A stretch of DNA of 63,419 bases from NCBI RefSeq assembly GCF_001194135.2, contig NC_068994.1:970235-1033653 (forward strand). The letters run 5' to 3'. Origin of the DNA: Octopus bimaculoides. Taxonomy: Eukaryota. Positions 2,653-45,180 of this stretch are shown here, in pieces. Position numbers and translations under genes: made by a program. The notes below the pieces were generated by a model, which was not told the origin of the DNA, did not search any database, and was given only the letters and a program-made list of their open reading frames with translations. Position 1 is the first letter of the stretch, and each line of letters starts with the position of its first letter.

Positions 2653-3556
2653 TTATCTTCTACAAGAATCAAGTGGATCTCTTTGATATGCAGTAATCCC
2701 ATTGTCATTGGATGGAGAATGGTATTGTCCCACATGTCTTGGACGTTTCCTTTGTAAAAAAGTGAAGGACTGAATTATGTCAGCTTCTTTGTTTATAATT
2801 TCTGTTTTCCTGGTTCCATTTACAGGTCTTCGAGATCTAAAATGTCGAAATGAATTCTTTTTACTATTTTTGGGAATATAGAACTCACCGGTGCAAGTGT
2901 GTCTGCAAGACTTGACTGATTCATCGACATTTTCGTGGTTACTTAATGAAGTCGATGTGAATTGATAAGCTTCCCCTCGAGTTATCGAGTTACAGCTTCT
3001 CTTATTACTAATTCTTGCTCCGCCCAATTTTATTTCACTATCTGTAGTATTATTTATCAGGGAGTTTTCCTGGTGGAACATATTGTTCCTGCCAAAATCA
3101 TTGTCCATAACTGAAACCTCGATACCATTTCGATGAAAATCTTCTGTGGCATTCTGTCGAATGTGATCCAGATAATCACTGGTTGGTGTCTGTAAGCTGT
3201 TGACCTGTTCTGCTGCATATCTTTGCAAAAATTCCAGGTAGCCAGGTCTCTGTCTTGCCAATAAGACTCTCATTAATTGTGTCTTCAATAACATCTTGCA
3301 AGTCATGGGACTAGACACAGCAGTCAAGGCCGTTGCTGACCGTTGTTGGCACAAATCATTTAATTTCATCTGATAATCCAAATAGGATTTTGGTAACATT
3401 GTTTGAGTTGGACTTAGGTCGCAATTATGAGAGGTTTGCTCAGGGATTTGGAAACTTGCAGGGAAGGTCATATTGGGAAAGTTCCAACGGCAGAACCCAA
3501 ACTGATGTGGGTGAGTTATGGTCGTTCCATTGTCCATGTTAACAGACCAAGAATTC
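2653..3556 (-). CDS. Orphan protein, terminal coding exon (likely start Met at 3537, ~294 aa); no recognisable domain
   Basis: About 900 nt stop-free ORF in AT-rich non-repetitive DNA. Strong acceptor on minus (tttttcttgactttttcttgcag|G at 3556). Good Kozak context (aacATGg) at 3537. Stop TAA at 2653-2655. Confidence 0.65.
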
Positions 3557-4134
3557 CTGCAAGAAAAAGTCAAGAAAAATTACTTTTTATGCAGTTGTTT
3601 GTGGGAAGAAGGGTCACATCAGTGGCCCTTTTTGAGTAATTTTGTGAATAGGGAGAGGGGGGATATATCTCAGAAGAGTAACCAGAAGACTTGAACTCCA
3701 CAAAAATTACCCAAAGAAACAACAGAGGCATGCAGGGACCAGGTAATGTTAAATTGGGTGACAACAGAGTGAAATTGACAAAAAGAAAGCCTTGGATCAG
3801 GTAGGGATGCTAAACTAGTGGGGCTCCACTAGAGGTATCCAAAGAGCAGGTAATTGTATTAAAATGGATGACAACTCAGTTGAAAGTACCAAATGGCAGG
3901 GGTGGAAACAGAGTGGACTCAACTGAAGGTATCCAAAAGACCAGACTCCATTGTAGGGAGCCAGAGATTCAGGGTTTTGTGTAACATCAGAGTGGGCACT
4001 AGGAAAGATGCCTAATGACCAGGTCATTGTAAACTGGACAACAAAGTGGATTCCACCAATGGTATCCAAGGTGCTTCCCACGAGTTTGACTTGCAAAAGA
4101 GACCTTTTATTAATTTCAAAGAAGTTTAAGACTA

Positions 4135-4870
4135 ATCCCCTTCAAAGTATGATCCTCTGACTTTTAGCACTCCATGAAGGCCCCATGGAAGTCGTCCGAA
4201 GGGAAGGTGTCTAGGACAGTTTTGATGACCATCTCTGTCAAGTAGGGGTTACCAGGATGGAATTGTGGACTGGTGCATTGTCCTGGTGCAGCTGCCACTG
4301 ACCCAAGTGGAAGAGTTCTCACCTTTTGCACCAAAATCTCTTAAATCCTCTCAAAACCTCCACAAACTACAATTTGTTGATCGTTTGACCAGTGGGAACC
4401 CAGTGGATGTAGATGAAGCTGTCAAATAAGGGGATCATCAAGAGATTCTTGCTGGCCTTGCTTTACCTTGCCTTCTTAGATCTGGGGCAGCCAGGACGCA
4501 TCCATTGGACATGATATCTCTTGACCTTTGGATCATAATAATAGAGCCAGCTTACGTCATAGGTCACCAGAAATTGAAGAACTCTTAAATTGCAGGTAAT
4601 GAACTCAACCATCTCCTGTTGTCCACAATGCGTCTTTCCTTCTGTTCATTGCTGAGCATCTTTGGAACAAGCTTTGCTCAAATTTCACCCATTATCAGAT
4701 CTTTGTGAATAATTTTGTGTACAGTTGCTGTACCAATTCCAAACTGTTGGCTTATTGTCTTTACAGACACATGATGGTCTTCATCCAGAAGATTACAAAT
4801 TTTCTCAACCTGTCGGTCATGATGACAGTAAGTTCTAGAAGTACAGGGTGTCTGGGATAAAGTTAACAAT
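4135..4870 (-). mobile_element. Mariner (Tc1/mariner) transposase remnant, pseudogenised
   Basis: Minus translation gives HTH-like VEKICNLLDEDHHVSVKTISQQFGIGTATVHKIIHKDL, then *AKLVPKML (WVPxxL motif), VTYDVSWLYYYDP (first D) and WQLHQDNAPVH (second D), with stops and frameshifts. Confidence 0.85.
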
Positions 4871-12371: not shown

Positions 12372-12577
12372 ATATTGGTTTCAGATGTTGGCTCAAGGCC
12401 AGCAAGTCCAGGGGAGGGGATGAGTCAATTATATCGACCCAGTGTGTAGCTGGTACTTATTTTATCGACCCCCGGAAGGATGAAAGCCAAAGTTGATCTC
12501 AGCAGAATTTGAACTCTGAACGTAAAGGCAGATGAACTGCAGCCAAGCATTTTGTCCACTGTACTAACGATTCTGCT
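12372..12577 (-). mobile_element. Octopus-type tRNA-derived SINE
   Basis: Reverse complement of the family seen at 17868, 23493, 38075 and 44975 (gttcaaattc.gc.gaggtc.actttgcctttcatcc...gggtcgat...aagtaccag). Confidence 0.75.
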
Positions 12578-17009: not shown

Positions 17010-20000
17010 GTGAGAAAATCAACTTTGCTATGCACGTTTTGCTGAGTGACTCCCTGAGTGTGAGATGATAATTAATTATGCCTCATTAAGTAAATCCATA
17101 ATTACAACTGATTGTTCTTTGTTTTTACTGCTTTTCTTTTAGAAATGGGAACTTTGTCTTCTGCGAACCATTCCACTGGCATTCAATTTATTGGGCCGAA
17201 CATCATCTGTAAACAAGACATGTGGTGGACTGACCAGTTATTCCTTCATTCTATCTACTACATTTACTGGAATATTACCTATAGCCACAAACAGCCTTCC
17301 CCTGGACCTATTGTTGTTCTGGTCTCGGTGAAACAAAACGATGACCAAAAATGGCATGTTGTGGCAAATGTAAGTAAAGAAGAGCTTTACTTTTAAGGTA
17401 ATGTTCATAGCCCTTTCAGGTTCTCAGGGAGTTTGCGGTGTGGCCCCAAGTGAGCCTTGGCCTAACAAAGCTATGAGGAAAGACACTCTAGTTATAAACA
17501 TCAATAGACAGTCTTTTGACCTGTCAGAAATACCAGCGAAATGTCCTTCACTGTGTGACCTGCCGTATTAGAACAGAAAGGGTTGGTAAAAGAATCTGAA
17601 ATTCTGTTGGTTTAATAATTGTAGGGAAAGCATAGACAATAGGGTGGATAAGATCCTGGATATTTGAAATTGTTGGGGGCAGGGGAGTATTTAAAAGAAA
17701 GTGGGCTGGGTGGGGATGGAATTGCTGTGAAATCTCTCACAAATTATAGCTTTTAATCATATAAAGAAAAAGACACAGAGGACAATGGAGTTCCTGACAA
17801 ATGGTGGTCATAGCTGGAATGTCTTTTATCAGGACTGATCCAGAAATAAATGACAATAATCTGAGGATGCCGGGTGAAATGCTTAGCGGTATTTCGTCTG
17901 CCGTTACGTTCTGAGTTCAAATTCCGCCGAGGTCAACTTTGCCTTTCATTCTTTCAGGGTCGATTAAATAAATACCAGTTACGCACTGGGGTCGATGTAA
18001 TCGACTTAATCCCTTTGTCTGTCCTTGTTTATCTCAGCCCCCTGTGGGCAATAAAGAAATAAATGTTTGTCCTCTTTTTCTATCTTTCAACCTACACCAA
18101 CTGTCTGTTCCCTATTTTTAGCTGTTCTTACACCAACTGATGTCCCCTATTCCTAACCCCTCAATAACTGATTGTGCCCGATATCTACACCTTACAGCCT
18201 CTGCCTGTCTTCTAGATTATAACTCCTCTTCTCCACTAACTGTATCTTCTCTTTGACTGCCAATCTTTCACTTTTCCTGTAGACCAGTCGTCCCCTTTTC
18301 CCAGTGAAATTGGACAACAATATGAGGTACTCTCTACGCTTGACAGCTGTCAGCCAGCATGGTGTTGTTGGTATGGGCTCAACAACATGGACAACACACA
18401 TACCAGGTAAGGACAGTTTGGTCACTCTTTAAGGACCAAGTGCTCAACACACAATCAAGACAAGGACAGTTTGGTCACCAAATACTCAATGCATGTGTCA
18501 GGTCAGGTACTTTATGCTAGAGGTATTATGCAACCCAGTAGAGATCATTTCATAATTAGCAACTGATATGAACCTCCATTTAGTTTAAAAGGTGAGCAAG
18601 GTTTGTGGACACCAAGCAGGATTAAAAATGAAACTTGTGAAAGAGAGTATAAGAACCTCTCACTGAGAAACCAGCCTGAGACCCTGAAAAGAGGGAGGAG
18701 ACAGATACCATTACTAGGTAATCTTCTTATTAAAATAACACAAACAATGGCAAATACTGAACTGATTAGGGTCCAAGATAAATTCTTAATTTGGCTGATA
18801 ACTGGGTAAGACAAAGTGGGAGGCTGGCTGCAACTCTTATGGCCTCCTTTAAGTGATGGAATTTGAATGAAAGGATATTGTCATTGGTAAGGATATAGTG
18901 GTCAAGTGGACTGGGGTTTGAACTCGCTGTTCAATCTATTGAAGGTATTTTTTTTCTATTGAATGGGCTGAACTTGTAATTCAAAGGATCCATGTTGCCA
19001 CATGCTGTGCCCAGGAGCTTTACATTAGAGTACAGATGTTTGTCGAATACTCTACTACTTACATGCTAATTTAGTGAGTACAGAGTTCAGTTGAGCCAAC
19101 GATTTGAATTCTCTTTTATCAAAACCAATCAGCATGTGATGCGTGCACACGCGCGCGCGTGTGTGTGTGTAGGTTAAAAGGTTGCTGCTGTTGAACTGGT
19201 ATGTGAAGCAAAAACACCTTCTGGTATTTATTCTTTCCCTGAGGGTCACAACTCTCCATCCTCCATTGTCAGTATTGCCACCAGTGACCCAATGGTCGAT
19301 CCATTGATCTGCTTGTGTTGACCAAAAATTGACAGACACTGAATAAAAGAATTGACCATTATAGTAGTGGTGCAGCAGTTGGATTGAGGTGAGAGAGAAG
19401 AGGTGGGTGACTGGCTGTTGTGCATTGCTCAAGAGAGATGGAGATGGTCAGTCTGTTTTGGACTGCACGTCTGGCCTTTCCAGCCATGTAGTGACTATGA
19501 TTAACCTTTTACAAACAGAAGCTAAAAAACCCCTTAAATCACACTCTTAGAAAAATAGTTACTCATGGGATAGTGTAGTCTTGGAAGTAGAATAGCTGAA
19601 ACTAAAAAGGTGGGACAGTCATATCTGGAAACTATTTGATAAAATTTGCTGTAGGGCTAAACAGCAACAACTTCATCCTTGTATATTATTTCTCACTTCC
19701 TCCCCACTCCTCCTCCTCTTCTTTCTCTTTTTTCCAGACCACCCCTTACCACAACCCATCCACAAGCTGGAGCTGATGGGGCACACCCTGAATGAAGACA
19801 CTATTACAGCCAAAATAAAATGGCAAACGAAACGAGGTGAATAATGTTTTCCTTTCATATCTTCATTGCGTTGACATCCTTTCCATGGCACATAACTGTC
19901 ACATAACACTAGCACACTTCTGTCACACTGTAACATGCCATTGTCACACTGATATCCTGTCTTCTCTTCTACTCTCAGACCAAAGCTGTTTCTATAAACT

Positions 20001-21180: not shown

Positions 21181-23878
21181 GGATGGCTGTAATACTGAGT
21201 ATGAAGAATTTAAAAGGAAGGAGGGATGGGGAGAGGAATTGAGAGTGGGAGGGAGGGATGTATGGATGGTTGTAATACTGAGTAGTATGACTTTAAACGA
21301 GATCTGGTAGTGGGGCTCTGGTTGAGGAGTTCCAGGGTTTTGCTTCCCTTTTCCACTCCCACCCCACTCGACTTCACCATACCAGCTGTTATTATTCTCA
21401 CTGCCCCACCCCGCCTCACACTTAACGTCTAGTTTCAACTACTCGTTGCAGACGCCAGGGTAAACAACCCATGCAGTAACAGCAGTGGACTCATTAACAG
21501 AGTGGTGTCCCTTGCAGTAACTCTTAAATAATCGGATCTGTTTTTTTTCTATGTCGATCTTATTAAAAGAAATTGCTGCTATTACCTCAGCCGCCAGTTG
21601 TCTAGAAATTCCACCTACGAAATTCTGTGTAATAATGCCCAAAGTACATACACACACACCCACCTATACACACACACACGAAGTATATCTATATATAATC
21701 TCTTTCTAACCAGCTCCAGAATCCGTCCGTAACCTCCATTCCTGGAAAGCAGAAGTCAACAGAAATGGAAGCAACAGTTCAATTATCCATATTAAGTGGA
21801 AAGCGCCTGCCCACCTCTCAAACAGAAACCCAATCACCGGATACTTGGTCTCTTGGATGAAACTGGTGCCCCTTCTACAGGCACCTTACATAAAACCAGA
21901 CAGGGCTAGAATTCAACTTCCACCAGTATGTTTTCTATTATTTTACTCTTGTAGATATGTTTTATTTCAAAATATAAAATACGTTGGTTGTGGGGTTAAG
22001 TTGTTGGCTTTCAGGCCTATAGCCAATAAGTTCAAATCTTAGTTTAACCTTTGTGTTGGGTCTCTGCTGAATAATTCTCTATGTATCGGTTTGCCTGGCA
22101 GACAAATCCCTCGTTCAGTTCACAAATGATTGGTTAATGGTTGGAAGTTCAATCAGTTATCAAGACACCAATGTATTCACCCCCTTTAGGTCAGAAGGTC
22201 ACCTCCATATAGGTAAACTATACTGTCAGAAGGAAATTGAGAAATTTGTAGGCCCCCAGCAATTACAAGTACCATGAGGGGTTCATTCATAATTTCAAGC
22301 AGGGGTAGGAGCTCTCTGAACTCTGCCCAGCCTTATCTTATTCTCACAGCTATGCTCTCAGAGTATCCACATCTGCTACTAACTTGGTCACCTAGATAAT
22401 TATTTTCAAACTGGTAGAATGTGAAAGGATGAAAATTTGGTTATTATTTCTAGTGGTCCTTGTAACTACATAGAGGTTCCTTTGTTGTGTTCACTGATAA
22501 TGAAGGTTATGATGATCGTGAGCAGGAGGAGAAGGAAGAAAAATATAAGCCGTAGAAAAGCCATTTCAAGGTTAGTAGCTGCTAAGGTTCAAACCTTACC
22601 TCACTTTCATGTGCATGTTTATAGCTGTGGGGGAGTCCCCGAAAGATTTAGCTGAACTTTGGGCTCACTCTGCTATCAATCTATGCCCACTGCTTATCTC
22701 ATTCCCTGATGTTCTCTCCTACATCTGACAGGGTCCGACTTAAACTTTAATCTCCATCTAACTTTATATTAACATGTTTTCATCTTCCTTATCTTCTCTG
22801 TCAGGGGGCCCTTACCTGTGTCCTAAAAGGTCTACAACATGGCTACCAGTACAAAGTAACTGTACAGACAGTCTCCAAAGGGGGCCTCAGTCAACCAAAT
22901 GTCATTCTGCTGCAACCTGACAGTAAGTCATTGTTTTGTTTTCGTTTGTGTTGTTGTTAATGTTTGGACATGTTGCACGGGTGATGAGATGTGAAAATAT
23001 GTCTGCCAATAGGGGTCTTGGTGGCTGGGTCAACATTTATTTGGAATATTTGCTAATTAATTCAATGTTTTTTTTATTTATTTAATTACAGATGTTATGG
23101 CATTGGATCCTGTGGAGAGGAGGTTTGTGGCAACGCTCTGTGAGTTATTTCTGTCATAGTTCTTTGTTTATGATGACATTTATCACTGCTTGCCATCATC
23201 ATCATCATCATCATTCTCATCATTGTTTGTTGCTGTCTTCATCATGTATCCCATCATCATCATTATCATCACCACCATCATCATTGTCATTGCCATATGA
23301 AAGTTTTGTAGTTTTCCCTCTTATATTTGTTGACATCTTTTTTTAATTGTAGCCAAAGAATTATTTTCAGTTTCTACATTCTGGTTACCTCTATTTCAAG
23401 ATGTTTGTCTTTCAAACATTTCTCCATTTCTTTCAGATGATTATTATTATTATTATTATTATTATTATCATCATCATCATCATTATTATTGTTAAGGTGG
23501 TAAGCTGGAAGTTAGTGCATGGAACAAAATGCTTTGCAGCATTTCTTCAGTTCCTTACATTCTGAGTTCAAATTCCACTGAGGTCAATTTTGCTTTTCAT
23601 CCTTTTAGGGTGGGTGATGTAATCGCCTTCCCCTTCCCTGCAAAATCTGCTGGCCCAGAGCCAAAATTTGAAACCATTGGGTGAACTGGCAGAATTGTCA
23701 GCACACCAGAAAAATTGCTTTGCAGCATTTTGTTCATCTTTATGTTCTAGGTTCAAATGATGCTGAGGTCGATTTTGTTTTTCATCCTTTCAGGGTCGAA
23801 AGTACCAGTTGAGAAGTGGGGTCATAAACGTCTTACTCCCTCCCCTCAATTTGTTGGCCTTGTACCAAAATTTGAAAC

Positions 23879-23915
<37 letters not shown>

Positions 23916-26900
23916 CAGATCCCTTTGATGTAAAAGTGTCCACCCTACTTACCATGGTCATCCCTATCTCACTGATGTTGCTGGCTTTAGTGGTCACTCT
24001 AATGTTTCTCTTGATTAACCATCACAAGAATGTCCATTCTATTTGTGGTAAAAGTCACCATACAAAGGTAAGTTGGATCACCACCATTGATTCATTAGTC
24101 TTACCATTTCATTCATATATAAAAGACAGGCTAACCGCATTTTAGTCTCTCATTACTGCTTGGTCAATTCAGACTAAGCGGGGTAACTATTAAATCTTGT
24201 CCCAAGCCTACAAGCCCTTTGGGTGCAAGCTATGTATTGCATAATATATGCAGTGCACAATGCAGCCAAGTTTCAGGTGAATTACAGGTAAGTCTCACTT
24301 CAGTTTGCCACCATTGCATTGCAATGTTTTTAATTGTAGGACATTGAGAAACCCCGCTGTGCGAAAAGGGTCCCAGCACAACCATCCCTACAGTGCAAAG
24401 ACTCTTATGTACTGGACCCGAATCAAGTACACTTGATGGATGTGATTGGTGAAGGAGCCTTTGGGAAGGTGATGCGGGCTAAATACATCAGTTCTACTTT
24501 GCCAGGTATCAAGACTACTGTTGCTGTCAAAATGTTGAAAGGTAAGAAAATAAAATCAACAAAAAAAACAACTTCTTTATGATTTTGTTATTGAGGTTTG
24601 GTCAGTTCTCAGGATATAAACATTGCTTCTGTCTGACCTCAGGTAGTTTTACTTAGTGATGATTAAGGTATGGTGGTGTGGAGAAGATATGTTACTCTTT
24701 CACCTCAGGCCTGATCTAAGACACATATGGTATGTAGGTGGTCAGTCTTTTGGCTATGTTAAATCAAAAGATCTATTGCTCCTGAACTGGCTGTATTTAT
24801 ATTTACTCTCTTGGTCCATTTTTTTTTCTCTCCCAAGAAGAATGGTGTCTTGCCATGGTGCCATTAATTGAATGTAGAGCTTTGTCTGCTTTGAGCTGAT
24901 CTTTTTCATTTTGTGATGATCAGGTGTCCAATACAGGATGCCTTTACTGTGGAACCCTTCACCTGTTGAGAGGGTTCGTTTATTCATTCGATTCCACTGA
25001 ATAGTTAACCTTTCAATAAATTAGATTCTATAACATCTTTAATCAGATCTCAACCTAACAAATGAAATGAGAGAGAAAAAATGTTTAAGGTTCAAAACCA
25101 ATAAAATTTAGGTGGAAACTCTTCCTCTATAAATGAGCGAGGATAATTGTTTGAAATGAAGGGAATACTGTTTGGTTGCCATTGGTTACACTGAATCTAT
25201 TTGCTGTTGGTTAATTCTTCAGACAATGCCAGTTACAATGACAAAAAGATGCTGTCCTTTGAGATTAGTGCCATGAGGGATCTTGGTTCCAACAGACACA
25301 TTGTCAGTCTCATTGGTCACTACTGTGTTAGGAACCAACCGGTTCTGGTGTTGGAATATTGTCCACTGGGGGATTTACAGAATTACCTGAGGAAGTTCAG
25401 GGACAAGGTAAGTGGGCTCACCTTCATCATTGTTTCATTGGGGGCCACTTTCAGATATTAATGAGACCTCATCCCTGAGAATTTCCATTAGACACTTCCT
25501 TGTTCTTGCGCTGTGTGAATTTCATGTGTTGGTGCACCTGTTTATTGTTACATGCATTTACCTGTTGTTAGGTGCACCTCTGTTATATGCTGTTGTCACC
25601 AACATTTGTTTGCTGTTATGTGCATCTGCTGGTTATGCATATGTGTGGGTTTGGTGTGGGTGTGTTGTGAAATTTTGTCTTTTTCTTCGTTGTTGTTGTT
25701 GTTTTGCCAGACGTTAACCTTGAATAAGCAGACCTGTGATCAAAAGCTTCAGTAGCTCAGGTGTAGTAGTAGAAGAGGCGTGACAGCAATTGTGTGTGCT
25801 TTCTCTTTTTAAGATGGTGGAGTGTAATTAGAGGTATGATTTGAGTGCTATTTCTATCAGGTGGGCAACCATAAAGAGGTCCCCTCACTGGTCCCACAAT
25901 GGGATTATGTTTATGTGTGAAGGCATATGTGTGTGTGTGTGTGTGTGTGTGAATCTGCATGAATTCCTCTCCTTGTTTTCCACTACTGTCTTCCCCCTCC
26001 CTCCATTACAATCAGCCACTCTCTTTCTCTAACTTACCTCACTACTACTGCTGCTACGCCCTCCCTTTCCTGTCTAACCTCTCTCTCCTTAGGACCCCCA
26101 CACTGCTAGAACCACCCAATATGGTTACCAGAATGATCCTGGGCCTGGCAGCAGCAACCATTTGAAAGGTATATATAATGTTTATTTATTCATTTAATTA
26201 TATTTATTATGCATTGATGACACTTATTGAAACCCTGCACCATAGATTCAGGGCTTCGTTAGAGTAAAATGACTTGATTGCTAATTATCATCAAGTTCCA
26301 GTTTGTTTACTATTAACACTATGGCTTCACTGTATACTGGGTCTTTGTATCCATTTGTACCATTTCCTTGCAGTAACATCCACCACCACCATCACCATTC
26401 ACCACCACCTATCCTTGGGTACCTTCAGTAGGGTCCACACTGTTGTCACCCACTACTTGGCCCTTTCTTGGTTGTATTCATTGAAACATTTGGACCATGT
26501 CTACTGTCAGAGAATTAGTTCCTCTCTTCAGGCCGTCCCTCTCAGAGATCCTTTAAATGGTTAAAAGTGCTGTTCTACCTGCCACCAATTCCACAAAGAT
26601 CATATATGTTACCTGTGTCCTACCTGAACTATTAGAAAACAATAATCTGTCTAGAGCCTGCAGTTGCTACCCTGGGAAGCCCAGTCACAAATATTCCCTA
26701 AATTTAATTCTTATGAAACTCTTTCAGATTGTTGTTTATGAAGTGGATTCCTTCAAAACCAACTTGACTGATTCCTTTCTTTCTTTTTCAAGAATTTCCA
26801 GAAATGACATTCACTACAATGTTGTCATACATTCGACAGATTGCCATTGGGATGGTGAGTTGTGCTGGAGGCTTTATTAATCGATCACTCCTGATTATTG

Positions 26901-29900
26901 ATCTCTATTTTTGATATTGAAAATAATATTTTGTTTGCTAAATGACTTTTGATGTGTTTTAAAGAATAAAAACCAACCTAATATATCCTTGTTTGTATTA
27001 GGGTACCATTAAGGATTATCAGGTCAACGTATCATTCTTCGTTTGCATTCAGGAGTATCTCTCAGCTCAAAAGATCATTCACAGGGACCTAGCCGCCCGC
27101 AATGTACTGGTATCTTCCCATGATTTGGTCAAACTATGTGACTTTGGGCTGGCCAGGGATGTTTACGAGAATGACTTCTATCACCTGAAAAGCAGACAGA
27201 AACTTCCTTATAAGTGGATGGCCATTGAAACATTGAAAGACCAAATATTTACTGTGAAGAGTGATGTGTGAGTAGATTTGCTTGGAACCTTCTTTCTTTG
27301 ACTTTCGGGACGTTTAGTGTGAGAGTGGGTTGGTACATTCTTCAAATTGTGATGTTTACTTGAAGTAGTAGGACTCTGCCAAACCCTTCCTAGTCACATT
27401 TTATGTTGGATAAATTTTATTAGAGTTAATATGCAGCTATATATGTATATATATGAATGATATATGTATATACATATGTATATATCAATGTATATGTATG
27501 TATGTATATATATATACATATGTAGATGAATGTATATGTATGTATATATATATATATATACATATGTATATGAATGTATATGTATGTATATATATATACA
27601 TATGTATATGTATGTATATATATACATATGTATATATATACATATGTATGTATATATATACATATGTATGTATATATATACATATGTATGTATATATATA
27701 CATATGTATGTATATATATACATATGTATATATATATATATACATATGTATATATATATATGTATGTATGTGTATGTATATATATGTATGTATATGTATA
27801 TATATGTGTGTGACGCAAAATGTCCAACCATTAAGCTAAGAAACTTTTCTCTTATTTTCTTTTTTAATCTTTCATCATTCTTTTCATTTATTTAACTTGT
27901 ATTACTAACGTGCTTCTGTAATTATCAAGTAACTGACAAACGCCATCAAAATCATAACCATTAATTGTTGTGTGCCATACAACATGAATTTTGACATACA
28001 ATATATATATATATATATACCTCTTGTTTCATTGTTTGCTTTTTAGGTGGTCCTTTGGTGTGGTAATGTGGGAAGTGACTTCGTTTGGCAGTTGCCCCTA
28101 TCCTGCTTTAAATGGCCTTGAACTCTATCAGTCTCTTGAGCAAGGATATCGCCTGTCCTGTCCTCCAAACTGTTCACCAAAACTGTATGTAGTTTAAAAA
28201 AGATTTTTTTTTGTTTGTTTCTGCTAGATGTTTCACAGGGTGAAAGGTGACTGTGATAATGTTTCTGTATAGTATAATAATGTTGGTGTGTGGAATGATA
28301 ATGTTTCTGCATTGGATAGTAATGCATGTATGTGTAATGATGGTGTTGTTGAGTATGTGTGTGTGTGTGTGTGTTTGAAGTGAAGATGTTTTTGTGAGTG
28401 AAGTGATAATGCATTTAACTAATACAATAATGTTTGTGATTGAAATGATAATGTCTATGAGAGATGAATTAAGGTTTTGTGGATGATGTCATTGTGCAAA
28501 ATAAAAATATATCTATATGTGATATTATTGTGTGTGAAGTGATAAATTATTGATATGCTAATAGTATTTTGATACAATACTGTATTATGGAATATATCTA
28601 CCGATTTTAGCCAATACTGTCTGGATAGATGGGTGTAAATGACTTTATATAATATCTTCAAGGGCTGTGAAAAAAAGGGTCAGCTGGACTAGTTTCAAAC
28701 CTGTGTTGGGATTTCATTAGTGACTGACCATTCTTATTCTCTTTTAGTACCCTCTTTAACTATAGCCATTGACACAGCTAATGAAGCCACAAATGGAAAT
28801 AAGAGAAACCTATTATGAATTATACTGTGACCAATGATTTAAAATGCAAACTATATTTATATATTTTAAATGTGTCATGTTGCTGTAATATTTCTCATGT
28901 GACATACCTGTGATACAGGTGATGCATTGTATTTTGTGATCTGTGGAACAAAACCATCACTGACCCACATTTGGACATGTTTCTCAGCAACATATACACT
29001 CACACTTACACACACACATGCGTGCGCACATGTGTGTGTGTGTTCTAAGATTCTCAGATTGTTACTGAGTTTCATGTTTTTGACTGGACATTTAGAAATA
29101 CAAAACTCCCATGATAGTAGCCAATCAGCATTTAATAAACTCTACACATTTGTGGCACAGTGAAGATTTGTGAGACATTCCTAAAATATTCCATCTGAGA
29201 TTCTTCAGGTGAAGAGATGCACACTTGGATGTATGCATCAACAGTTCGACCGACACACCAGCTCAACCACATATTCACAAACACGGGGAACTCTCCTAAC
29301 TCGCAATGTCTTGTTGCTTTGTTAGCAACTGATTTGATCTCTCTTCAGGAGAACTTAAATAAGACTCAAAGAAAAATCATCAATACGTGTGTGTGTGTGT
29401 GTGTGTGATTGAGTGTTGCTATGTTCTTCATGGAATCTCCAACATTCCAACAGAACTGTAAGGAAATGCCTCAATTCCAGAATATTCTTAATAACTTTCT
29501 TATCTTCAAAATAAAGTTGAAACATAAAATATGAGCAATTTCAAGAGTCTAGTTTTTTTTTCTAGTTATTCCATAATGAAGAATTGTTGGCACAGAGAAT
29601 CAACCATGCGTCCTGGGTTTTCAGAATTACGCTGGAGTGTTGAAAAACTTATGGAAGAAGAGAATTGTTACCTTCAATTAGAGAGCAGAAGAGAATGTAG
29701 TGCTGTAGATGGCACTGTTGCAGCCAGCCCATTATTGGAATCAAAGTAAGACAACTTGTTATTATATATGCATGTTTGTGGCTGTCATATGACATATCTG
29801 TAATGTGTCATAAGTAGATCTGACTGACATTAAGATATATCACAGTTAATCTTCATCAAGTGTCAGCCATCATATGTATGATTCCAGTTCACCCATTCAA

Positions 29901-35938: not shown

Positions 35939-36140
35939 TCATTCTTTAATTTGTTTCAGTCATTTGACTGTGGCCTTGCTGGAGCATTGCCTGAAAGAGT
36001 GTTAGTTGAAGAAATTGAACCCAGGACTTAGTCTTTGTAAGCCTAGTACTTATTCTATTGGTCTGTTTTGCTGAACTGCTAAGTTATGGGCGACATAAAC
36101 ACACCAACATTGATTGTAAAGCGATGGCAGAGGGACAAAC
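35938..36140 (-). mobile_element. Octopus-type SINE (second family/orientation) with (TA)n tail
   Basis: ttgtttcagtcatttgactgtggcc.tgctggagca...aagcctagtacttattctat.ggtc..ttttgctgaac.gctaagtta...aaacacaccaaca. Confidence 0.65.
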
Positions 36141-36149
36141 ACTAAATGG

Positions 36150-36560
36150 TTTGTTGTTGCATCAAATGTGTTGCAGAATCTGCATTTAGAGTCGGAACCA
36201 GTTTGAAGAATATTAGCCAGGTAGTTTCTGGTAAACAAAATTTGATCTTGTGCTGCCAATATGAAACGTTTAGCCTCTGCTTTCAGTCCTGAACTTCTCA
36301 GCCACCGATGGATTGTTGCTTGGTCTACACCAACATTTCAACTTTGAAAAGTATATACTGTCCATGCAGGGGCTTCTGGCCCCACCACTCCTCAATTTGT
36401 TTTTGCTCATTCTTTGTTGCAGTCTGTTTGATCCGTTTTGCTTTTTTTCATGGCAGTGGTTTCATGTTCTTCGTCTCATTCAGGGTTAATGCCAAGTTCC
36501 CTTGGTAATTTGCAATTTTTCTTGACAATAGAATGTGACTTTTTTGTTGCTTCATGTTTG
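36150..36560 (-). mobile_element. R4/Dong-like non-LTR element fragment (zinc-knuckle region)
   Basis: Minus: WWGQKPLHGQY... and AAQDQILFTRNYLANILQTGSDSKCRFCNTFDATTNHLV (AQDQ...CRxC...HL motif). Confidence 0.75.
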
Positions 36561-37091
36561 CACACGAGCTGAAAGGTACAATATGTAGAATGGAGCTGGA
36601 AGTCAATAATAAAACCAATGGCTTTTGGTGGAGGTGATGGGGATAGTAATGATGAAGGCATTCTAATGAGACGGGGAAGAGAGACATTAAAGGATGATGA
36701 GAAGGCTTCCACACAGTTTCCATCTACCAGATTGTGTTCACAAGTCATTGGTCAATTTGCTGCTAGAGTTGATTACACTTGTCCAAGGATTCTGTGAGAA
36801 TAATCAACTTTTTGAAATGATCTTCTTAACAGCAAAACTCTGCCATTTTCCATCTGTACAATGAAATGGTTTACATTAAAGTGAAGCCATTAACTGAAAC
36901 AGTCCGATGTATCATGTGTAAAGTGAATCATCTATGAAAGACCAAAAATGTAGGACGATGTCAGGACAAAGAAGGTGAAAGGTTAATCTCCATTCTGTTT
37001 AGACTAAAATCCATATTGTTTTTGTCTTTGTGAAATTTGATACAAGCAGGTGACAGAGTGGAGATGGAACACCCTGCGTACATACATACAT

Positions 37092-37205
<114 letters not shown>

Positions 37206-37255
37206 GGTGCCTTCTCAATGGAATTGGTATTCTTTAGAAGAGAGAAACAGCTAGA

Positions 37256-38268
37256 ATGAAACTAACAGTTACTCTTGTGTTCCTTGTGGCTTTTGCCCTG
37301 ATTGTCGGAGGTAAGAAGAGTTTTAACACCTCATGCTTTATTTCATCTCAAGTTTAATTTTACTGCTATGCCCATACTGGGGCACTGCCTTCAAAGGTTT
37401 TACTCAATTTTGTTGATCTCACTCCTAATGCCTGATACATTATTTATTGATTTCTATTTATTGAATGGTTATGTTATATATATCATCATTTAACCCATAC
37501 TGGGATGGTCAGATGATTTGACCAGTGCTGGTAAAGCTAGGGGCCACACCAGGCTGCATTGTCTGTTCTGGAATTGTTTCTATGGCTGAATGCCCTTCCT
37601 AACACCAACCACCCTGCAAAATGTACTGGGTACTTTATATATGGCACCAGCATCAGTGTTTCCAATATGGCACCAGCATGTGTTTTTTATGTGGCACTCT
37701 GCTGTGGTGGATGGGTCTTTTTGAGTACAGTAAGGTGCTTAGTCCTTTGTCATCTCCTTCGTCAGGCTCAGTGTTTTGAGATCAACCTTCAATACTTCCA
37801 TGTCTTCCTGGGTCTCCCTCTTCTACAAATTCCATCCACTTTAAGTGATCGACACTTCTGCATTCTACTGTCTACATCCATACACATCACATGACCAAAC
37901 CAGCATAATATATATATATATANNNNNNNNNNNNNNNNNNNNNNNNNNNNNNNNNNNNNNNNNNNNNNNNNNNNNNNNNNNNNNNNNNNNNNATCTTTTT
38001 ATCTTTTATCTTTTCTTGGTTTCAAACAGAGGCTGAGATCATGCTGGAGCTCCACCTTTTAGTGTATTAAAGAACTGTTAGCACGCCGGGTGAAATGCTT
38101 AGTGGCATTTCACCTGCCTTCACATTCTGGGTTCATATTCTGCTGAGGTTGACTTTGCCTTTCATCCTTTTGGGGTTGATTAAATGAGTACCAGTTACAC
38201 ACTGGGGTAGATGTAATCAACTTAATCCCTTCCCCTAAATTTGAGGCCTTGCACTTCCAGTAGAAAGA

Positions 38269-38313
<45 letters not shown>

Positions 38314-39838
38314 GTATGATTATTCATATTCTCTGTTCAACTTGTGCCAAACATTTCAACCCATGCGAGCAACAAAGACAAACATTAAATGATGATGATG
38401 ATGATGATGACAATGATGGTGATGGTAATGAACCTCAAATTCTTTGTAATTTGTTATGGTAATGTCCCCTCATCCATTGCCCTTCTGGCAAAGTAAAGAA
38501 ATGTTGTTGTTGTTGTCTGAGTGTTGGATTAGCAGAAGTGTTTGAGGCTGAGACAAGTTCAAATTCTGCCGAGGACAACATTGCTTTCATCTTTTTAGGG
38601 AGTCGATGAAATAAAGTACCAGTGGTGTCTTAGGGGTTGGTATAATCAGTGAAACCCTTCTCTTCAATCTATGACATTCTTCCAATGCTAGAAATATTGT
38701 TGTGGCCATATGTGCAGGAATGAAATTTGCTTAGGGGTTCAAATCTAGGTCTAACCTAGGATGTTTGAAGCACTTTCATTGCCATGCCCACCACCCAGCA
38801 AAATTTAGGGAGTGCACTTGCAACGCCTGCACCCTAATTTCTGAACCTATGGTTGTGGCTGTCGTTTTTGTTGTTGTTGTTAATTTTTATTTACATTTTC
38901 TTTTTTATTCTTTTTACAGTTCAGTCTGCTTCTCGTAAGTACGTTTTAGATATAATCATGCACACAGGCACACACACACACACACTCATACACATACACG
39001 CTCATACACACACACACTCGTACACATATACGCTCATACACACACACTCACACATTCACACACACACACATTCATACACACACACGTGCATGCACACATA
39101 TTCACACATACACATTCACACACACATTCATGCACACACACATTCTCACACACATACATTCATACACATACACACATGTTCATACACACACACGCATGCA
39201 ACACACACATTCACACACACGTGCATGCACACACATATTCACACACACATTCACACACACACACACATTCACGCACACACACATTCTTACACACATACAT
39301 TCATACACATACACACATGTTCATACATACACACACATTCACACACACATATTCACACACACACTTACACACACACACACTCTCACAAACACATACACAC
39401 ACACATACACACTGTTGTTTCCTCTCTTATTCAAAATATTCTACATTTGTTTCACTATTTTCAGAAGATGGACATGACCATCATGAACACCATCAACATG
39501 AAGGTAAGACATTTATCTCTGGTTCCCAGCAACCAGTTGAATAGACCCCTAGTAACCAGCTGAACAGACCCCTAGCAACTAGTTCACTGAACCCAGGTGG
39601 TTAAGTAGCTCTGAAATTGTCTGTAAACCACATGTCATAGGAGTCCAGTTGGTCCTTTTACTTCATACCTTTACAATATTAATTGGTCATTTTGGTAGAG
39701 AAGAAGCCTGCCTGGTTTAATGATGAAGTCTTTAAGTCTAGGATTAAACCTAGTTTTGGAGGGAAGGAACTGGTCTCTTTCTTTCTTCCCACATGCAAAT
39801 GGTTGCCGATATTTATGAATATTACAAGTATTCATAAA

Positions 39839-39882
<44 letters not shown>

Positions 39883-41642
39883 NNNNNNNNNNNNNNNNNN
39901 NNNNNNNNNNNNNNNNNNNNNNNNNNNNNNNNNNNNNNNNNNNNNNNNNNNNNNNNNNNNNNNNNNNNNNNNNNNNNNNNNNNNNNNNNNNNNNNNNNNN
40001 NNNNNNNNNNNNNNNNNNNNNNNNNNNNNNNNNNNNNNNNNNNNNNNNNNNNNNNNNNNNNNNNNNNNNNNNNNNNNNNNNNNNNNNNNNNNNNNNNNNN
40101 NNNNNNNNNNNNNNNNNNNNNNNNNNNNNNNNNNNNNNNNNNNNNNNNNNNNNNNNNNNNNNNNNNNNNNNNNNNNNNNNNNNNNNNNNNNNNNNNNNNN
40201 NNNNNNNNNNNNNNNNNNNNNNNNNNNNNNNNNNNNNNNNNNNNNNNNNNNNNNNNNNNNNNNNNNNNNNNNNNNNNNNNNNNNNNNNNNNNNNNNNNNN
40301 NNNNNNNNNNNNNNTATATATATATATATATATATATATGTATGCATATATATATGTATGCATATATATATATGTATGTATACATGCATATTTATGCATA
40401 CGTGTATACCCACACAAACAAATTTATATTATCCCAGCCTCCATCATTTCATTGCTTGTTTCCCATCTTTTCTCTGATGGACAGTTTTATTCACAACCAC
40501 GTCTCCTCTGTCATTGCAGTCCTTTGTCATTTAACTCCCTCCTGAGGCTGAATCCCCTCCGGCTCGTGTTCCTTACATTGCCCAATATGTTTCTGGCTCT
40601 TTCTCCTCCACTAAATTCATCCACTCTGACACCCCTACACTCCTTTATCTGCCCCACCCCACCTACTCACACCCCTGCAGTCTTCTCACTTAAAACACAA
40701 AACCCCATTCCCCTTAGACATAGTTTTTCTCTCAGTTCATCTCTTCTTGTCAGATGTGTAATGTTAGTGTGTAACATTACACACTTGTCCTCTGTAGACA
40801 TGTAATATTACACACAAGCATTATGGGATGTTGGTAATAGAAGGAAGCATTATGGGAATGAGATATTTCTAGAGAGGGCATTATGGGATTTCAAGGTTGT
40901 TCTTTAGCTACAGGTTAGCTCTGATAGGACAGACCCATGATCAAGGCATGCCTGTCATGACCCTCCCCTCTTGTCTATATCTGTGTCTATATTGTAATGT
41001 ATTGTTTGTTTAAGATTTGTGATTTGAAATGTTGCAAGGGAATCAAAAATGTCCCAAACATGAGGATTTAGGAATTAATTTATAATTGTGGAAGTTGTTT
41101 AGAAAGCTATGGCCTTGACCTGGCTCTCAAACCGAAGGTGAGAAACACAGATTTACAAAATAACAAAGTTTGCATTGTGATTTTCCAATGTCATAATTAG
41201 TAAAGAATTTTAATTAATGAATCTCTAAATATTTTCAGATGCGTCGCACCATCAAGGAGGTAAGGGAACCATATTTTATAAATAGGTGTGTGTGTGTATG
41301 TGTGTGAATGCATGTTAGTGTGTGTGTGTGTTTAAAGGAAAAGAAAGGGACAGGAAGGGGAGAAATCACATTAAAGAAACAAACACAGTGTATCGATGTT
41401 GACAGTATAAATGCATTGTGCAGACGTGAGTGTATAGAGAGAGAGTGTCTCAGTGGTCTTTAACTTGGACATAATACAATAATGTTTACTTAAGAATTTG
41501 GACAGTGCTATCATGTCCCCAGAATTCCATTCATCCTAAATATCAGCCGCTGACTTAATTTCTCTCTAATCCTTTCCAATTTTTCCCAATTTTTCTCATG
41601 TTGTCTGTTTATTTCTTTTCAGAAGAACAACCAGCGAACTGA
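37256..41642 (+). CDS. Small secreted His/acid-rich peptide precursor (49 aa) encoded by micro-exons
   Basis: Exons 37256-37310 (g|gtaaga), 38920-38934 (15 nt; tttttacag|...c|gtaagt), 39465-39503 (39 nt; tattttcag|...g|gtaaga), 41239-41259 (21 nt; tattttcag|...g|gtaagg), 41623-41642 (ttcttttcag|...TGA). All introns are phase 1. Spliced product MKLTVTLVFLVAFALIVGVQS-ASQDGHDHHEHHQHEDASHHQGEEQPAN*. Confidence 0.8.
37490..37905 (-). mobile_element. RTE LINE 3' end (ORF tail and 3'UTR) in intron 1 of the peptide gene
   Basis: Minus: CWFGHVMCMDVDSRMQKCRSLKVDGICRRGRPRKTW, followed by the same 3'UTR as 20480 and 55084. Confidence 0.75.
38075..38270 (+). mobile_element. Octopus-type SINE with (ATT)n tail
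   Basis: gttagcacgccgggtgaaatgcttag...gaggttgactttgcctttcatcc...; same family as 17868. Confidence 0.75.
38960..39410. repeat. Degenerate (CA)n/(CATT/CATA) microsatellite between two micro-exons
   Basis: Directly visible. It is the source of the HT-repeat ORFs at 38853-39563. Confidence 0.9.
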
Positions 41643-41743
41643 CCACATCAGCCAATCATATTGGAAGGATGACCAGGACAACCAATCATATTGGAAAGAT
41701 GACCAGATCAGCCAATAATTTTATATTTGATGGCAACACTTTA

Positions 41744-41830
41744 AATAAAATTGTTAAAGAGACAGTCTTCAGTGTTCCTGATAATCATCTTTTCACCTCT
41801 TTATAACCAATATTACAACAGTTCAATAAA
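41744..41830 (+). terminator. Candidate polyadenylation signals of the His-rich peptide gene
   Basis: AATAAA at 41744-41749 and 41825-41830, about 100 and 180 nt after the TGA. Confidence 0.5.
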
Positions 41831-41870
41831 TATTGATTGTTAACAAATTAACTTTTGATGTTTTGTGTGT

Positions 41871-41928
<58 letters not shown>

Positions 41929-44340
41929 CACAGAATTTTGTCAGTGAACAGGTCACAGTCTCAAAGTGACGAAAATATTTTGACAAATTAAATTTAAATG
42001 TTGAAGTAAATCTAACGGTTTTTGTGTGTTTCTTAAATGGCTTATAAACACCTTCCACACTGCAATTGCTATATATATTGAGAGAAACGGTGAATATGTT
42101 GAGAAGTAGGGATGTGATCCACAGAGGACCAGTTTCATTTTGATATATGATACATGTTCCTGTGTTGGTAATTATACCTGTCCTAAACAAAATGGCATTT
42201 CTTTTTGACTCACCCTCATAATCTAATCGGTAAGATTTTCCAACATTCACATTATCTCCTGCCATGAGATTCATTGACTTATTGTTCCCTTTTAGTTATT
42301 CACTTTCCTGTATTATTTATTACCGTTATAATTCTCCATACCGTCAGTGTCATTGCTACCCCCCCCCCTCATCATCACCATCATTGTTGATGTTGTCGTT
42401 GCCATCACTGCCACCACCAGTTTTTTTCTTATTCTAAAGTACGTCGGAATCCACATGTGACCACATGCACCATGAAGGCATGACATGTATACCAAATATT
42501 TCTTTCTAATAAAGCATTTTTCTTTCTTTCTCCCTCGTTTTCCTTTTTCCTTCCTTCCTCACTTTCCCACTTCTTTCCTTTCTTCTTTCATTACTTACTT
42601 TCTTTATACAATAATGCCATTATATTAGGTTTCTTCAGATAAAAATATTTGTTAGTGTCATCATTTTTTTTAAAGAATTCTAAATATAAATAAAATGTCA
42701 CAGAAATCAAGATCAATAAACAAAAACAAAAACAAAAGCCAAATAACGTCAATGAGAGAGAGTCAAATAGAAAAATAATTAAATTGTTGACAGAATACCC
42801 TTTTCTTAAGGAAAAAAAAAGAAGGGAAACAAGAAGAAACCAAAATTTGTTTATATTTAATACCAAACAATTTTATTATAATCTTTGGAAGGTTTCTCCA
42901 CATAGGATCATTCTCCTTATTATTTTAAGAGATTTCTTAAAATTGAATGCTTTTGACATTATACTGATATTTTTTCTGCTCATTTAAATTGCCAATTAGT
43001 TAAATGATAGATAACACCTACATCTTTTATGCATCACAACAACAAGAACAACATTATCAGGTGAATGGCAGTGAGACGTCATTTTACAATGGCAAGACAG
43101 ACGTGACTTTCAATTAAATATTTTCCGGCTCTGGTTGAGATAAGAAATACAATACAGAGCACAATAAGTTTTCTGCTAACATTTGAGAATCTTACAGAAT
43201 TGTCTGGCAGGAAATATAATATATTGAATTGAATATCCTGGAATGGAAGAATCTAGCAATAGTTTTCTTCATTACAATGAAGCAGGTGAGATGATGATTT
43301 CACACACACACACACACACACATGCACACACACGAACACACACACATACACACACACACACACACATGCATGCACATACACACACATGCACACTCACATG
43401 CACACACACATGTACACACACACACATGCATACACACACATATATAAATATATAGGCGTGTGCATGTGTACATGTATATATCTCATGATGATGATGATGA
43501 TGAGATATATTATATATATAAACACATGCACACACATTTGTATAAGGCTATATATCTTAAATATTAGCCTTAGCTATGATTGGTAATTATAAAAATATAA
43601 ACATATTCCATGTGGGTTTTTGCTGTGTGGTTAACAAAAGTGCCAGGGAAAGTTCCGACAGATCATTTTGCAGGTTGTTGGTCACTCTTCAGAGGAGGCC
43701 AGCCTGATTTCCTTCTCCCATTAATAACAAAGAATATTCAGTCACTATATAAAGCAGAAGAACTGAAGTAAATATGAATATTGGAAAGCCTTAGCTGTGT
43801 TATAAAATTTATAAGAATCTTAAAACATTTCTTCAATGCCTTTGGGTACAGAAAAAAGAGTAGGGGAAGACCCCCACCCTCATAGACCAATCTCCTCTGG
43901 AAAGCACTCAGCAAACTGGAGTCTTCCCCACATCTTTTTCTCACACATCAAAAAACATGGATGGAATGCATTTACATTTTTATGATTTCATATTACAGCT
44001 AAGTCTTTCTAGTATCTAAATTTCAGATTTTTCATATTGTAGATGTGTTGTATGTGAAGCATGCATTGTTTTGATAAGGACAAGCTGTCTACAACACAAA
44101 GACATATTTTTATGCCATATATTTCATATATTAAATTTCAAATGAAGTTTATGTTATGCATAAATAAATGAATAATAATTCATAAACATGTAGCATATTT
44201 ATGTGCATTTTATTGGTGTTCGTAAGCCATAGAAACTATGCTAAAGCTGACTCTTGAGATCAGTACAGTCCTGTCGGTTCTTGTTAAACAATCCAACCTA
44301 AGCCAGCTTGGAAAACAGACATTAGATGAAGGTGATAATG

Positions 44341-44974: not shown

Positions 44975-45180
44975 GTGGCAGAGTGGTTAGCACATTGGGC
45001 AAAATGCTTAACGGTATTTCGCCTGTCATTATGTTCTGAGTTCAAATTCTGCTGAGGTCGACTTTACCTTTCATCCTTTCGTGGTTGATAAATTAAGTAC
45101 CAGTTGTGTACTGGCATCGATCTAATTGACTGACCCCCTCCTCAAAAATTTTGGGCCTTGTACCTAGAGTAGAAAATAAT
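44975..45180 (+). mobile_element. Octopus-type SINE (full-length copy)
   Basis: ggtggcagagtggttagcacattgggcaaaatgcttaacggtatttcg...gttcaaattctgctgaggtcgactttacctttcatcc...ctagagtagaaaa. Confidence 0.8.

Follow-up and report, generated by a model that had tools for sequence, protein, structure and literature searches.

Does a 63-kb stretch of Octopus bimaculoides DNA (the window: 63,419 nucleotides of contig NC_068994.1, positions 970,235 to 1,033,653 of the forward strand in assembly GCF_001194135.2) hold a genuine gene for a small secreted peptide, assembled from five very short exons, and if so, what does that gene encode? An initial annotation had proposed such a gene in the second half of the window, with a predicted product rich in histidine and acidic residues. 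The analysis described here points to a real orphan gene, restricted to Octopus, for a secreted His/acid-rich peptide that is likely a metal chelator; this is the account that we hold to be probable, though well short of certain. The gene has five exons, possibly six, and its internal exons are short and symmetric, interrupting the frame in phase 1 on both sides (phase 1-1). The locus is probably protein-coding; that it is transcribed, and its product translated, secreted and able to bind metal in some physiological role, we infer.

The exons were placed by reading positions 37000-42200 and by exact match to the predicted chain; positions follow the numbering of the window, and those prefixed L001 refer to the O. 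vulgaris locus on chromosome OX597827.1. All five exons lie on the + strand. The coding part of exon 1 (37256-37310, 55 nucleotides, nt) opens with the ATG, encodes MKLTVTLVFLVAFALIVG plus one further nt and ends in a phase 1 donor. Exon 2 is a micro-exon of 15 nt (38920-38934) encoding (V)QSAS; exon 3 (39465-39503, 39 nt) encodes (Q)DGHDHHEHHQHE and carries the main cluster of His and acidic residues; exon 4 is again a micro-exon, of 21 nt (41239-41259), encoding (D)ASHHQG; all three are phase 1-1. The coding part of exon 5 (41623-41642, 20 nt) adds (E)EQPAN and the TGA stop codon. The donors of introns 1 to 4 read, in order, GAG/GTAAGA, CTC/GTAAGT, AAG/GTAAGA and GAG/GTAAGG (the slash marks the exon boundary), all four of them GTAAG; the corresponding acceptors, TTTTTACAG, ATTTTCAG, ATTTTCAG and CTTTTCAG, all consist of a T-rich tract followed by CAG, and the phase is 1 in four of four introns. 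Joined together, the 150 spliced nt yield a product of 49 residues, MKLTVTLVFLVAFALIVGVQSASQDGHDHHEHHQHEDASHHQGEEQPAN, followed by the stop. Exon 1 supplies the n-region and h-region of a predicted signal peptide, and exon 2 the predicted signal-peptidase site, VQS/A. The chain agrees base for base with the one first proposed, in coordinates, GT-AG sites, uniform phase and product.

Both ends of the chain are furnished with plausible signals. An A stands at position -3 relative to the ATG, and a TATA-like (TA)n run (37195-37205, +), in which a (CATA)n(CA)n microsatellite ends some 50 nt 5' of the ATG, is a putative core promoter from which transcription would start near 37225-37238; O. vulgaris keeps the run together with the 50 nt that separate it from the ATG. 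An upstream ATG (caATGg) opens a frame of 13 codons (37219-37260) whose TGA overlaps the main start codon (ATGA), an arrangement also kept in O. vulgaris; this upstream open reading frame (ORF) is relevant only with a transcription start 5' of about 37219, and, going by the TATA-like run, the start would fall just 3' of that point. At the other end, the 3' untranslated region (UTR; 41643-41850, +) contains a 30-nt tandem repeat and, as had been noted from the start, AATAAA signals after the stop, located at 41744-41749 and 41825-41830. The repeat (TGACCAGATCAGCCAATCATATTGGAAAGA, 41640-41716) begins at the stop codon, counts 2.6 copies in O. bimaculoides as against 1.6 in O. vulgaris, and contains CCAAT-like, possibly protein- or microRNA-binding motifs.

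The gene had been thought hidden and easily missed by standard pipelines, which turns out not to be so. A homology search returned a single match, UniProt A0A0L8H5U5 (A0A0L8H5U5_OCTBM), an 'Uncharacterized protein' of 49 residues from O. bimaculoides that stems from the same locus and is 83% identical to the product described here over 96% of the query. Its residues 1-36 are identical to the product and correspond to exons 1-3 with the same junctions, the 15-nt exon included. The remaining 13 residues (GKTFISGSQQPVE, then stop; 39503-39544, +) come from intron 3, exon 3 being read on past its AAG/GTAAGA donor, and the model lacks exons 4 and 5; the equal length of 49 residues is coincidental. 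The records consulted assign A0A0L8H5U5 no gene position. A 23-nt tandem repeat (39528-39579) overlaps the last 17 nt of this tail and extends into the intron. At the donor that A0A0L8H5U5 reads through, the O. vulgaris model splices; the read-through tail probably reflects an error of annotation or intron retention.

Nor is the gene without a homologue, as had been supposed. A HMMER scan of 1.84 billion representatives with A0A0L8H5U5 as query retrieved a second relative, an O. vulgaris protein of 96 residues (CAI9733572.1, UniProt A0AA36BH55) labelled 'Hypothetical predicted protein' or 'Histidine-rich glycoprotein-like', which is 74% identical to A0A0L8H5U5 over residues 1-39. The third match of the scan, a protein of 721 residues, was rejected as spurious, being a repeat protein that aligns only to the low-complexity tail. 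The locus is collinear in the two species (window 36136-41921 with L001 7522-17928, in blocks of 84-93% identity), and the flanking genes, the orthologue of a 306-residue ORF and a receptor tyrosine kinase, occur in the same order and orientation in O. vulgaris. Exon 1 corresponds to L001 10001-10055, with three substitutions, all in residues 2-6; exon 2 to L001 12091-12105 (VQSGP), with both splice sites intact; exon 3 to L001 14750-14788, where the O. vulgaris model takes an acceptor 6 nt further upstream, in frame; exon 4 to L001 17242-17262 (ESHHQG), which is included in A0AA36BH55; and exon 5 to L001 17660-17679 (EAQPSN and stop), with acceptor and stop at the same position. O. vulgaris keeps the five exon lengths and phases, the ATG, the four GTAAG donors, the CAG acceptors, the eight core splice dinucleotides, the frame and the position of the stop; it also keeps both AATAAA signals, in a 3' UTR that is about 93% identical outside the 30-nt indel. 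Frameshifts or lost splice sites in another octopod, which the initial annotation had named as the observation that would speak against its proposal, are found in none of the five exons of O. vulgaris. The five-exon product of that species is MRLTAALVFLVAFALIVGVQSGPHDGHTHHDHHQHEDESHHQGEAQPSN, followed by the stop, and shares 39 of 50 aligned positions with its O. bimaculoides counterpart, stop codon counted.

The two public models diverge at the 3' end. A0AA36BH55 consists of exons 1, 2, 3, an additional exon 3b, and 4; exon 5 is left out, exon 4 being spliced instead to an exon 26 kb downstream (L001 43156-43266), which adds a Cys/Trp/Pro-containing tail of 36 residues. This distant terminal exon has no counterpart in the window and lies beyond a 14.5-kb satellite array that is missing from the window. 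Exon 5 is used by neither public model; in each species it follows exon 4 at a distance of just 360-400 nt, behind a strong acceptor, and its stop, the 3' UTR and both AATAAA signals are conserved. It is therefore taken as the conserved terminal exon, and is probably a better one than that of either model. The 3' end formed by exons 4 and 5, as first proposed, is accordingly retained here as the probable one. In sum, exons 1-3 have been present in the O. bimaculoides protein set since 2015 and exons 1-4 are present in the O. vulgaris annotation; the gene is already annotated in both species, probably with wrong 3' ends, and the new part is a better gene model with a different 3' end, not a hidden gene.

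Beyond these two proteins, no other relative occurs among 5.8 billion clustered proteins or the 1.84 billion representatives, and a word-index search with A0AA36BH55 retrieves only the protein itself, with no O. sinensis or other annotated homologue on record; the O. sinensis locus examined covers the neighbouring gene only and does not extend to the His-rich gene. In the databases searched the gene is restricted to Octopus. Searches of the 63-kb window with the locus and the peptide (blastn, tblastn) reveal no paralogues, all matches being to repeats that resemble short interspersed nuclear elements (SINEs) or to microsatellite His runs. The exact 49-residue product has no entry in a collection of 15 billion proteins; literature searches run on the accession, on the peptide string and on terms pairing octopus with histidine-rich returned nothing on this gene; and the accession is not listed in the supplements of an O. 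vulgaris skin-mucus proteome, where a peptide lacking Lys and Arg would be invisible to tryptic proteomics anyway.

How far can such a chain be trusted? The most sceptical view is that splice-like sites in AT-rich, repeat-rich DNA have been assembled by chance and that there is no gene: microsatellites throughout the window yield His-rich frames, and frame compatibility was itself a criterion when the exons were chosen. An unbiased count was made of all intervals of the form TTT[TA]CAG...GTAAG, 9-90 nt long, on both strands of the 63 kb, with the frame ignored. The + strand contains 18 such acceptors and 42 such donors, and at the site densities found chance alone should give about one interval per strand; the observed counts are six on the + strand and three on the - strand. 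Exons 2, 3 and 4 account for three of the six on the + strand and lie within 2.3 kb of one another, every length being a multiple of three. A scan for first exons (ATG-initiated ORFs with a hydrophobic core running into a GT[AG]AG donor) gave mostly microsatellite artefacts, a few weak candidates and the transmembrane exon of the neighbouring kinase gene; exon 1 was the only clean signal-peptide-like candidate. Across all six frames of the whole window, exon 3 is the sole stretch of 13 codons with at least five His and at least three Asp or Glu. Strong-site micro-exons are very rare in the window, yet three of them are clustered and collinear, the gene is present in two public annotations, and O. 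vulgaris preserves the five exons, signals included, at its syntenic locus. The argument made at the outset, that chance assembly is unlikely, is strengthened by the clustering of strong-site intervals, by the uniqueness of exon 3 and by the conserved locus; chance assembly is effectively refuted by the O. vulgaris orthologue, and we set it aside as having next to no probability. A harder case is made by the view that the gene is transcribed and spliced, with an RNA that is non-coding or untranslated and whose splicing would account for the conserved splice sites, its ORF being fortuitous or else very young, arisen de novo from a CA/CAT-type microsatellite and not yet functional. Its grounds coincide in good part with the points that weigh against our own account. 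The exons are no better conserved than the introns, with 133 of 150 positions identical (88.7%) against 2904 of 3166 (91.7%) in aligned introns and flanks; the Nei-Gojobori method counts 12.5 nonsynonymous and 4.5 synonymous differences, a ratio of nonsynonymous to synonymous rates (dN/dS) of about 0.8, and the substitutions are distributed 4:6:7 over the codon positions (by inspection). The amino-acid sequence is under no detectable purifying selection and evolves near-neutrally, in a comparison of one species pair, O. bimaculoides and O. vulgaris. His-rich reading frames are common in this CA-microsatellite-rich window (53 bins of 300 nt), none other being also acid-rich. The two public models are not fully independent for exons 1-3, because one evidence track of the O. 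vulgaris annotation consisted of aligned UniProt proteins from O. bimaculoides, beside Iso-Seq, RNA-seq and ab initio predictions (PMC10700109); exons 3b and 4 of the O. vulgaris model cannot derive from A0A0L8H5U5. Eight possible isoform products (the 49-residue form and seven others, from both species) are absent from the 15-billion-protein collection, which includes transcript assemblies; and metal binding and function are proposed from composition alone. A non-coding or not yet functional transcript would also sit well with the CA, TG or TA microsatellites that adjoin every exon and with the lack of homologues outside Octopus.

Against it stand several features. Three internal exons with strong sites all have lengths that are multiples of three (chance probability about 0.04), and the extra 45-nt exon and the 6-nt alternative acceptor of O. 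vulgaris are in frame too; the ORF opens with a predicted signal peptide of textbook layout, with an A at -3 of its ATG, and ends in a terminal exon just before poly(A) signals; and in both species separate exons are rich in His and acidic residues, in one and the same frame. Gap openings number 8.8 per kb in the introns and none in the 150 exon nt; the 20 nt before the acceptors are identical at 94 of 100 positions and the 10 nt after the donors at 39 of 40. All eight His residues are retained, the codon of two of them having changed synonymously (CAT>CAC). When neutral evolution was simulated with the intronic substitution and indel rates, the ATG, an open frame free of frameshifts, the 16 core splice bases and the stop were all kept in 3.6% of runs, and all eight His in 18%, for a joint expectation of about 0.6% if the two are independent (0.036 x 0.18). 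What is kept is structure and composition, not the residue sequence; with one species pair, this constraint result is moderate evidence, not proof. We consider a non-coding or non-functional transcript improbable. The alternative that the gene is real while the 49 residues are not its true or main product comes closer to the evidence, and concerns chiefly intron 3. The O. vulgaris exon 3b (L001 15762-15806; 45 nt, phase 1-1, acceptor TTTCAG, donor GTGAGT) encodes the His-rich segment GNCNHGNHQHHHDHD, and its place in intron 3 is a stretch with no alignable counterpart in the window: homology to O. vulgaris ends at window position 39696 and resumes at 41143. Within this non-alignable core the O. 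bimaculoides assembly has a gap of 432 N (39883-40314), which breaks no exon or frame, and a counterpart of exon 3b may be absent from O. bimaculoides or may lie hidden in this gap. In the latter case the precursor would have about 64 residues and its mature peptide roughly twice the His. As to the internal exons, all are symmetric, so that skipping any of them preserves the frame and some could be cassettes; and the O. vulgaris model, with its 96 residues and its tail containing Cys and Trp, links exon 4 to the exon at L001 43156-43266, which would make a distant exon the terminal one. On the other side, neither exon 3b nor its 500 nt of unique flanks has any match beside the gap or elsewhere in the window, and no further His-rich symmetric AG..GT interval occurs in the sequenced parts of the introns; the distant terminal exon lacks a counterpart in the window and is separated from the gene by 14.5 kb of satellite; and exon 5 has the proximity to exon 4, the acceptor, the stop and the poly(A) signals already described. 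A different or additional main product is a real possibility, if on the whole an unlikely one. The second assembly gap of the gene (37923-37992, inside intron 1) breaks no exon or frame either: its two sides map collinearly onto the O. vulgaris assembly (37922 = L001 10656, 37993 = L001 10790), which has no gap there and in which the counterpart is an (AT)n microsatellite of about 130 nt with no exon, and judged by that counterpart the gap is harmless.

These exons invite a tentative proposal about the way in which the gene arose, to which we give little weight for now: that Octopus has a micro-exon gene independent of the micro-exon genes (MEGs) of flatworms, whose symmetric His-rich cassettes are gained, lost or alternatively spliced and have been recruited de novo from flanking CA/CAT-type microsatellites. 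It is based on exon 3b, which O. vulgaris has and O. bimaculoides either lacks or has in unread sequence, and on the 6-nt alternative acceptor. Microsatellites (CA, TG, TA or ATT) occur within about 30-70 nt of every exon (38961-39412, 37080-37205, 41864-41925; L001 15584-15693), and the His-rich exons are compatible with an origin from decayed repeats, since (CA)n reads His-Thr in one frame, a suggestion that is speculative. If the cassette proposal were true, the gene would provide a tunable series of secreted metal-chelating peptides and an instance of a young gene growing exon by exon.

What, then, would the product of the five-exon gene be? By inspection, its N-terminus fits the n/h/c layout of signal peptides and the established -3/-1 rule: K2 is followed by a hydrophobic core of 15 residues (L3-V17), then by G18 and by V-Q-S/A. 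The cleavage context has Gly at -4, Val at -3, Ser at -1 and Ala at +1; O. vulgaris has Arg for Lys2, and Gly-Pro for the Ala at +1. Pfam returns sub-threshold matches only, to the signal-peptide ends of secreted-peptide profiles such as Penaeidin and Conotoxin. The predicted mature peptide of 28 residues contains eight His, arranged in HxHH, HHxH and HH clusters, and seven Asp or Glu, with no Lys, Arg or Cys; its calculated isoelectric point (pI) is about 5.4 and its grand average of hydropathy (GRAVY) -2.4, and the net charge of about -7 at pH 7.4 shrinks to nearly 0 at pH 5.5. Its mass would be 3.2 kDa and its sequence would run from ASQDGH to QPAN; were cleavage to follow SAS instead, the peptide would begin with pyroGlu-DGH. 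The O. vulgaris mature form has 15 His in 45 residues. The signal-peptide-like N-terminus and the His/acid-rich tail free of Cys, Lys and Arg are thus present as first described; the composition given for the 28-residue peptide stands, and its length may be incomplete, O. vulgaris having the extra 45-nt His-rich exon.

From these properties a mechanism can be outlined. The precursor would be secretory, of 49 residues, or about 64 with an exon in the gap; exon 1 would provide the hydrophobic core of the signal peptide, the 15-nt exon 2 its cleavage site VQS/A, and the other exons an anionic peptide of 28 or more residues, predicted to be intrinsically disordered. By general coordination chemistry, its eight His and seven carboxylates are predicted to bind Zn, Cu and Ni; after secretion, the clustered imidazole and carboxylate side chains would chelate Zn2+, Cu2+ or Ni2+, and the peptide could buffer or scavenge metal outside the cell, for instance as part of nutritional immunity against microbes or to control metal-dependent enzymes within a secretion. 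Searches of Pfam and of the sequences in the PDB found no family and no related solved structure, and Rfam no match in the window. Two other assignments were rejected: a neuropeptide or prohormone precursor, there being in neither species a Lys or Arg after the signal peptide, a dibasic site or a C-terminal Gly for amidation; and the His-rich loop of ZIP transporters (Pfam Zip, PF02535), a compositional match obtained with A0AA36BH55 only, at E = 0.23 and 11 bits against a cut-off of 35.

The same composition is compatible with a His-metal coordinated material, and the peptide might be a secreted structural or cross-linking component (of beak, radula, sucker cuticle, egg capsule or adhesive) in place of a soluble chelator. 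Coordination of metals by His hardens a number of invertebrate materials, among them squid beak with its His-rich proteins, the Nereis jaw with Nvjp-1 and mussel byssus with its His-rich domains. The known structural His-rich proteins are, however, of far greater size, contain much Gly, Ala or Tyr and are for the most part basic; the Octopus peptide has 28-45 residues, is strongly anionic, and is devoid of Gly/Ala repeats and of Tyr or 3,4-dihydroxyphenylalanine (DOPA) sites. Searches of the HMMER representatives, Pfam and the PDB found no similarity to any structural His-rich protein. A structural role is in our judgement doubtful, and a soluble chelator is the function we continue to favour.

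If the peptide is made, it would be a genus-restricted secreted metal binder in an animal with a copper-based blood pigment and with secretions rich in metal-dependent enzymes, and, at 28-45 residues, an easily synthesised candidate for cephalopod metal handling or nutritional immunity. The locus further exemplifies the poor handling of micro-exon genes by pipelines, two public models having two different and probably wrong 3' ends, and offers an example of an orphan gene that keeps its exon structure while the encoded sequence drifts almost neutrally. Nothing is overturned by it: secreted peptides rich in His are a known kind, as are micro-exon genes, and UniProt already has an entry for this one.

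The surroundings of the gene can be described briefly. Exons of a receptor tyrosine kinase occupy 23954-29700 on the same (+) strand and end at least 7 kb upstream of the His-rich gene; the 5' end of the kinase gene maps near 15400. They include the transmembrane exon found in the first-exon scan (23954-24067, +) and the motifs GEGAFGKV and VAVKMLK at about 24448, NYLRKFRDK at 25381-25407, HRDLAARN, DFGLAR and KWMAIE at about 27080-27212, and MKNCW...RPGFSEL at about 29576. The kinase gene is orthologous to a gene for a 994-residue protein with fn3 and PK_Tyr domains at the neighbouring-gene loci examined, that of O. sinensis included. The ORF of 306 residues on the - strand (2653-3573) is 90% identical to a 309-residue 'hypothetical protein' of O. 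vulgaris for which the O. sinensis assembly likewise has an annotation. Pfam assigns the ORF no domain, and the search brought up no relative beyond Octopus; going by these matches, it is a second genus-restricted gene in the window, divergent from the kinase gene. Five other strong acceptor-donor intervals are unassigned: 4767-4827 (+), 54836-54858 (+), 59647-59613 (-), 32989-32975 (-) and 16061-16008 (-). A dispersed SINE-like repeat of about 150-190 nt with an (ATT)n tail, its copies 76-85% identical and with no match in Rfam, occurs at 38077-38266 (in intron 1), 17869-18015, 12394-12552 (-), 44986-45175 and 23745-23914, with a partial copy at 38556-38623. In O. vulgaris, just downstream of the His-rich gene, lies the satellite array mentioned above (L001 18549-33061; about 330 copies of a 44-nt unit, 96% matches). 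The array and some 13 kb of further sequence are missing at the window junction 41921-42076, and no copy of the unit occurs in the window; either the array has expanded in one lineage, or it has been collapsed in the O. bimaculoides assembly, which is built from short reads.

It remains to place the gene among known systems, beginning with those suggested by its composition. The name 'histidine-rich glycoprotein', carried by A0AA36BH55 in UniRef, is compositional and was rejected as an assignment: that protein of about 500 residues is marked by cystatin-like domains and a His-rich region of the GHHPH type, and the Octopus products, at 49-96 residues, share none of these features and match neither the cystatin/HRG domain nor any other in Pfam. 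Histatins, the salivary His-rich peptides of primates, are small, secreted, free of Cys and able to bind Zn and Cu; they are also strongly cationic, whereas the Octopus peptide is anionic (calculated pI 5.4, about -7 at pH 7.4). It moreover has no amino-terminal Cu(II)- and Ni(II)-binding (ATCUN) motif, there being no His at position 3 of either ASQ... or QDG..., no HEXXH motif and no sequence similarity to histatins, and on these grounds membership is ruled out. Tick microplusin/hebraein, tunicate clavanins and the poly-His-poly-Gly metalloproteinase inhibitors of vipers are all secreted and owe their activity to His-mediated chelation of Cu or Zn; some of these metal-dependent peptides are anionic, and some silence Zn enzymes in the gland. 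Microplusin/hebraein, however, has about 10 kDa and six conserved Cys where the Octopus peptide has none; clavanins are cationic amphipathic helices and the viper peptides are cut from a larger precursor, the Octopus peptide differing from both. Homology to any of the three was not found in the HMMER representatives, Pfam or the PDB.

In architecture, the nearest comparison is with the MEGs of schistosomes, which encode a signal peptide followed by very short exons with lengths divisible by three (15 nt being the commonest), separated by introns of 0.1-5 kb; the small products of MEGs are secreted, evolve fast and are confined to their lineage, and automated pipelines annotate them with difficulty (PMC10526429). 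The internal exons of the Octopus gene, of 15, 39 and 21 nt (and 45 nt in O. vulgaris), all phase 1-1, follow the same plan. The gene differs from MEGs in scale, with five or six exons as against 10-20, and with three or four internal micro-exons that in the five-exon model make up 75 of 147 coding nt (51%), where in MEGs they make up most of the coding sequence. It has no sequence similarity to MEGs and no MEG motif, the 1.84 billion representatives yielding two Octopus proteins and the one spurious repeat protein; it stands alone, the window containing neither a family nor a cluster of such genes; and its host is a free-living mollusc, not a parasitic flatworm. The Octopus gene is MEG-like in architecture, on a small scale, and stands beside the MEGs as a gene of similar build, not as one of their members.

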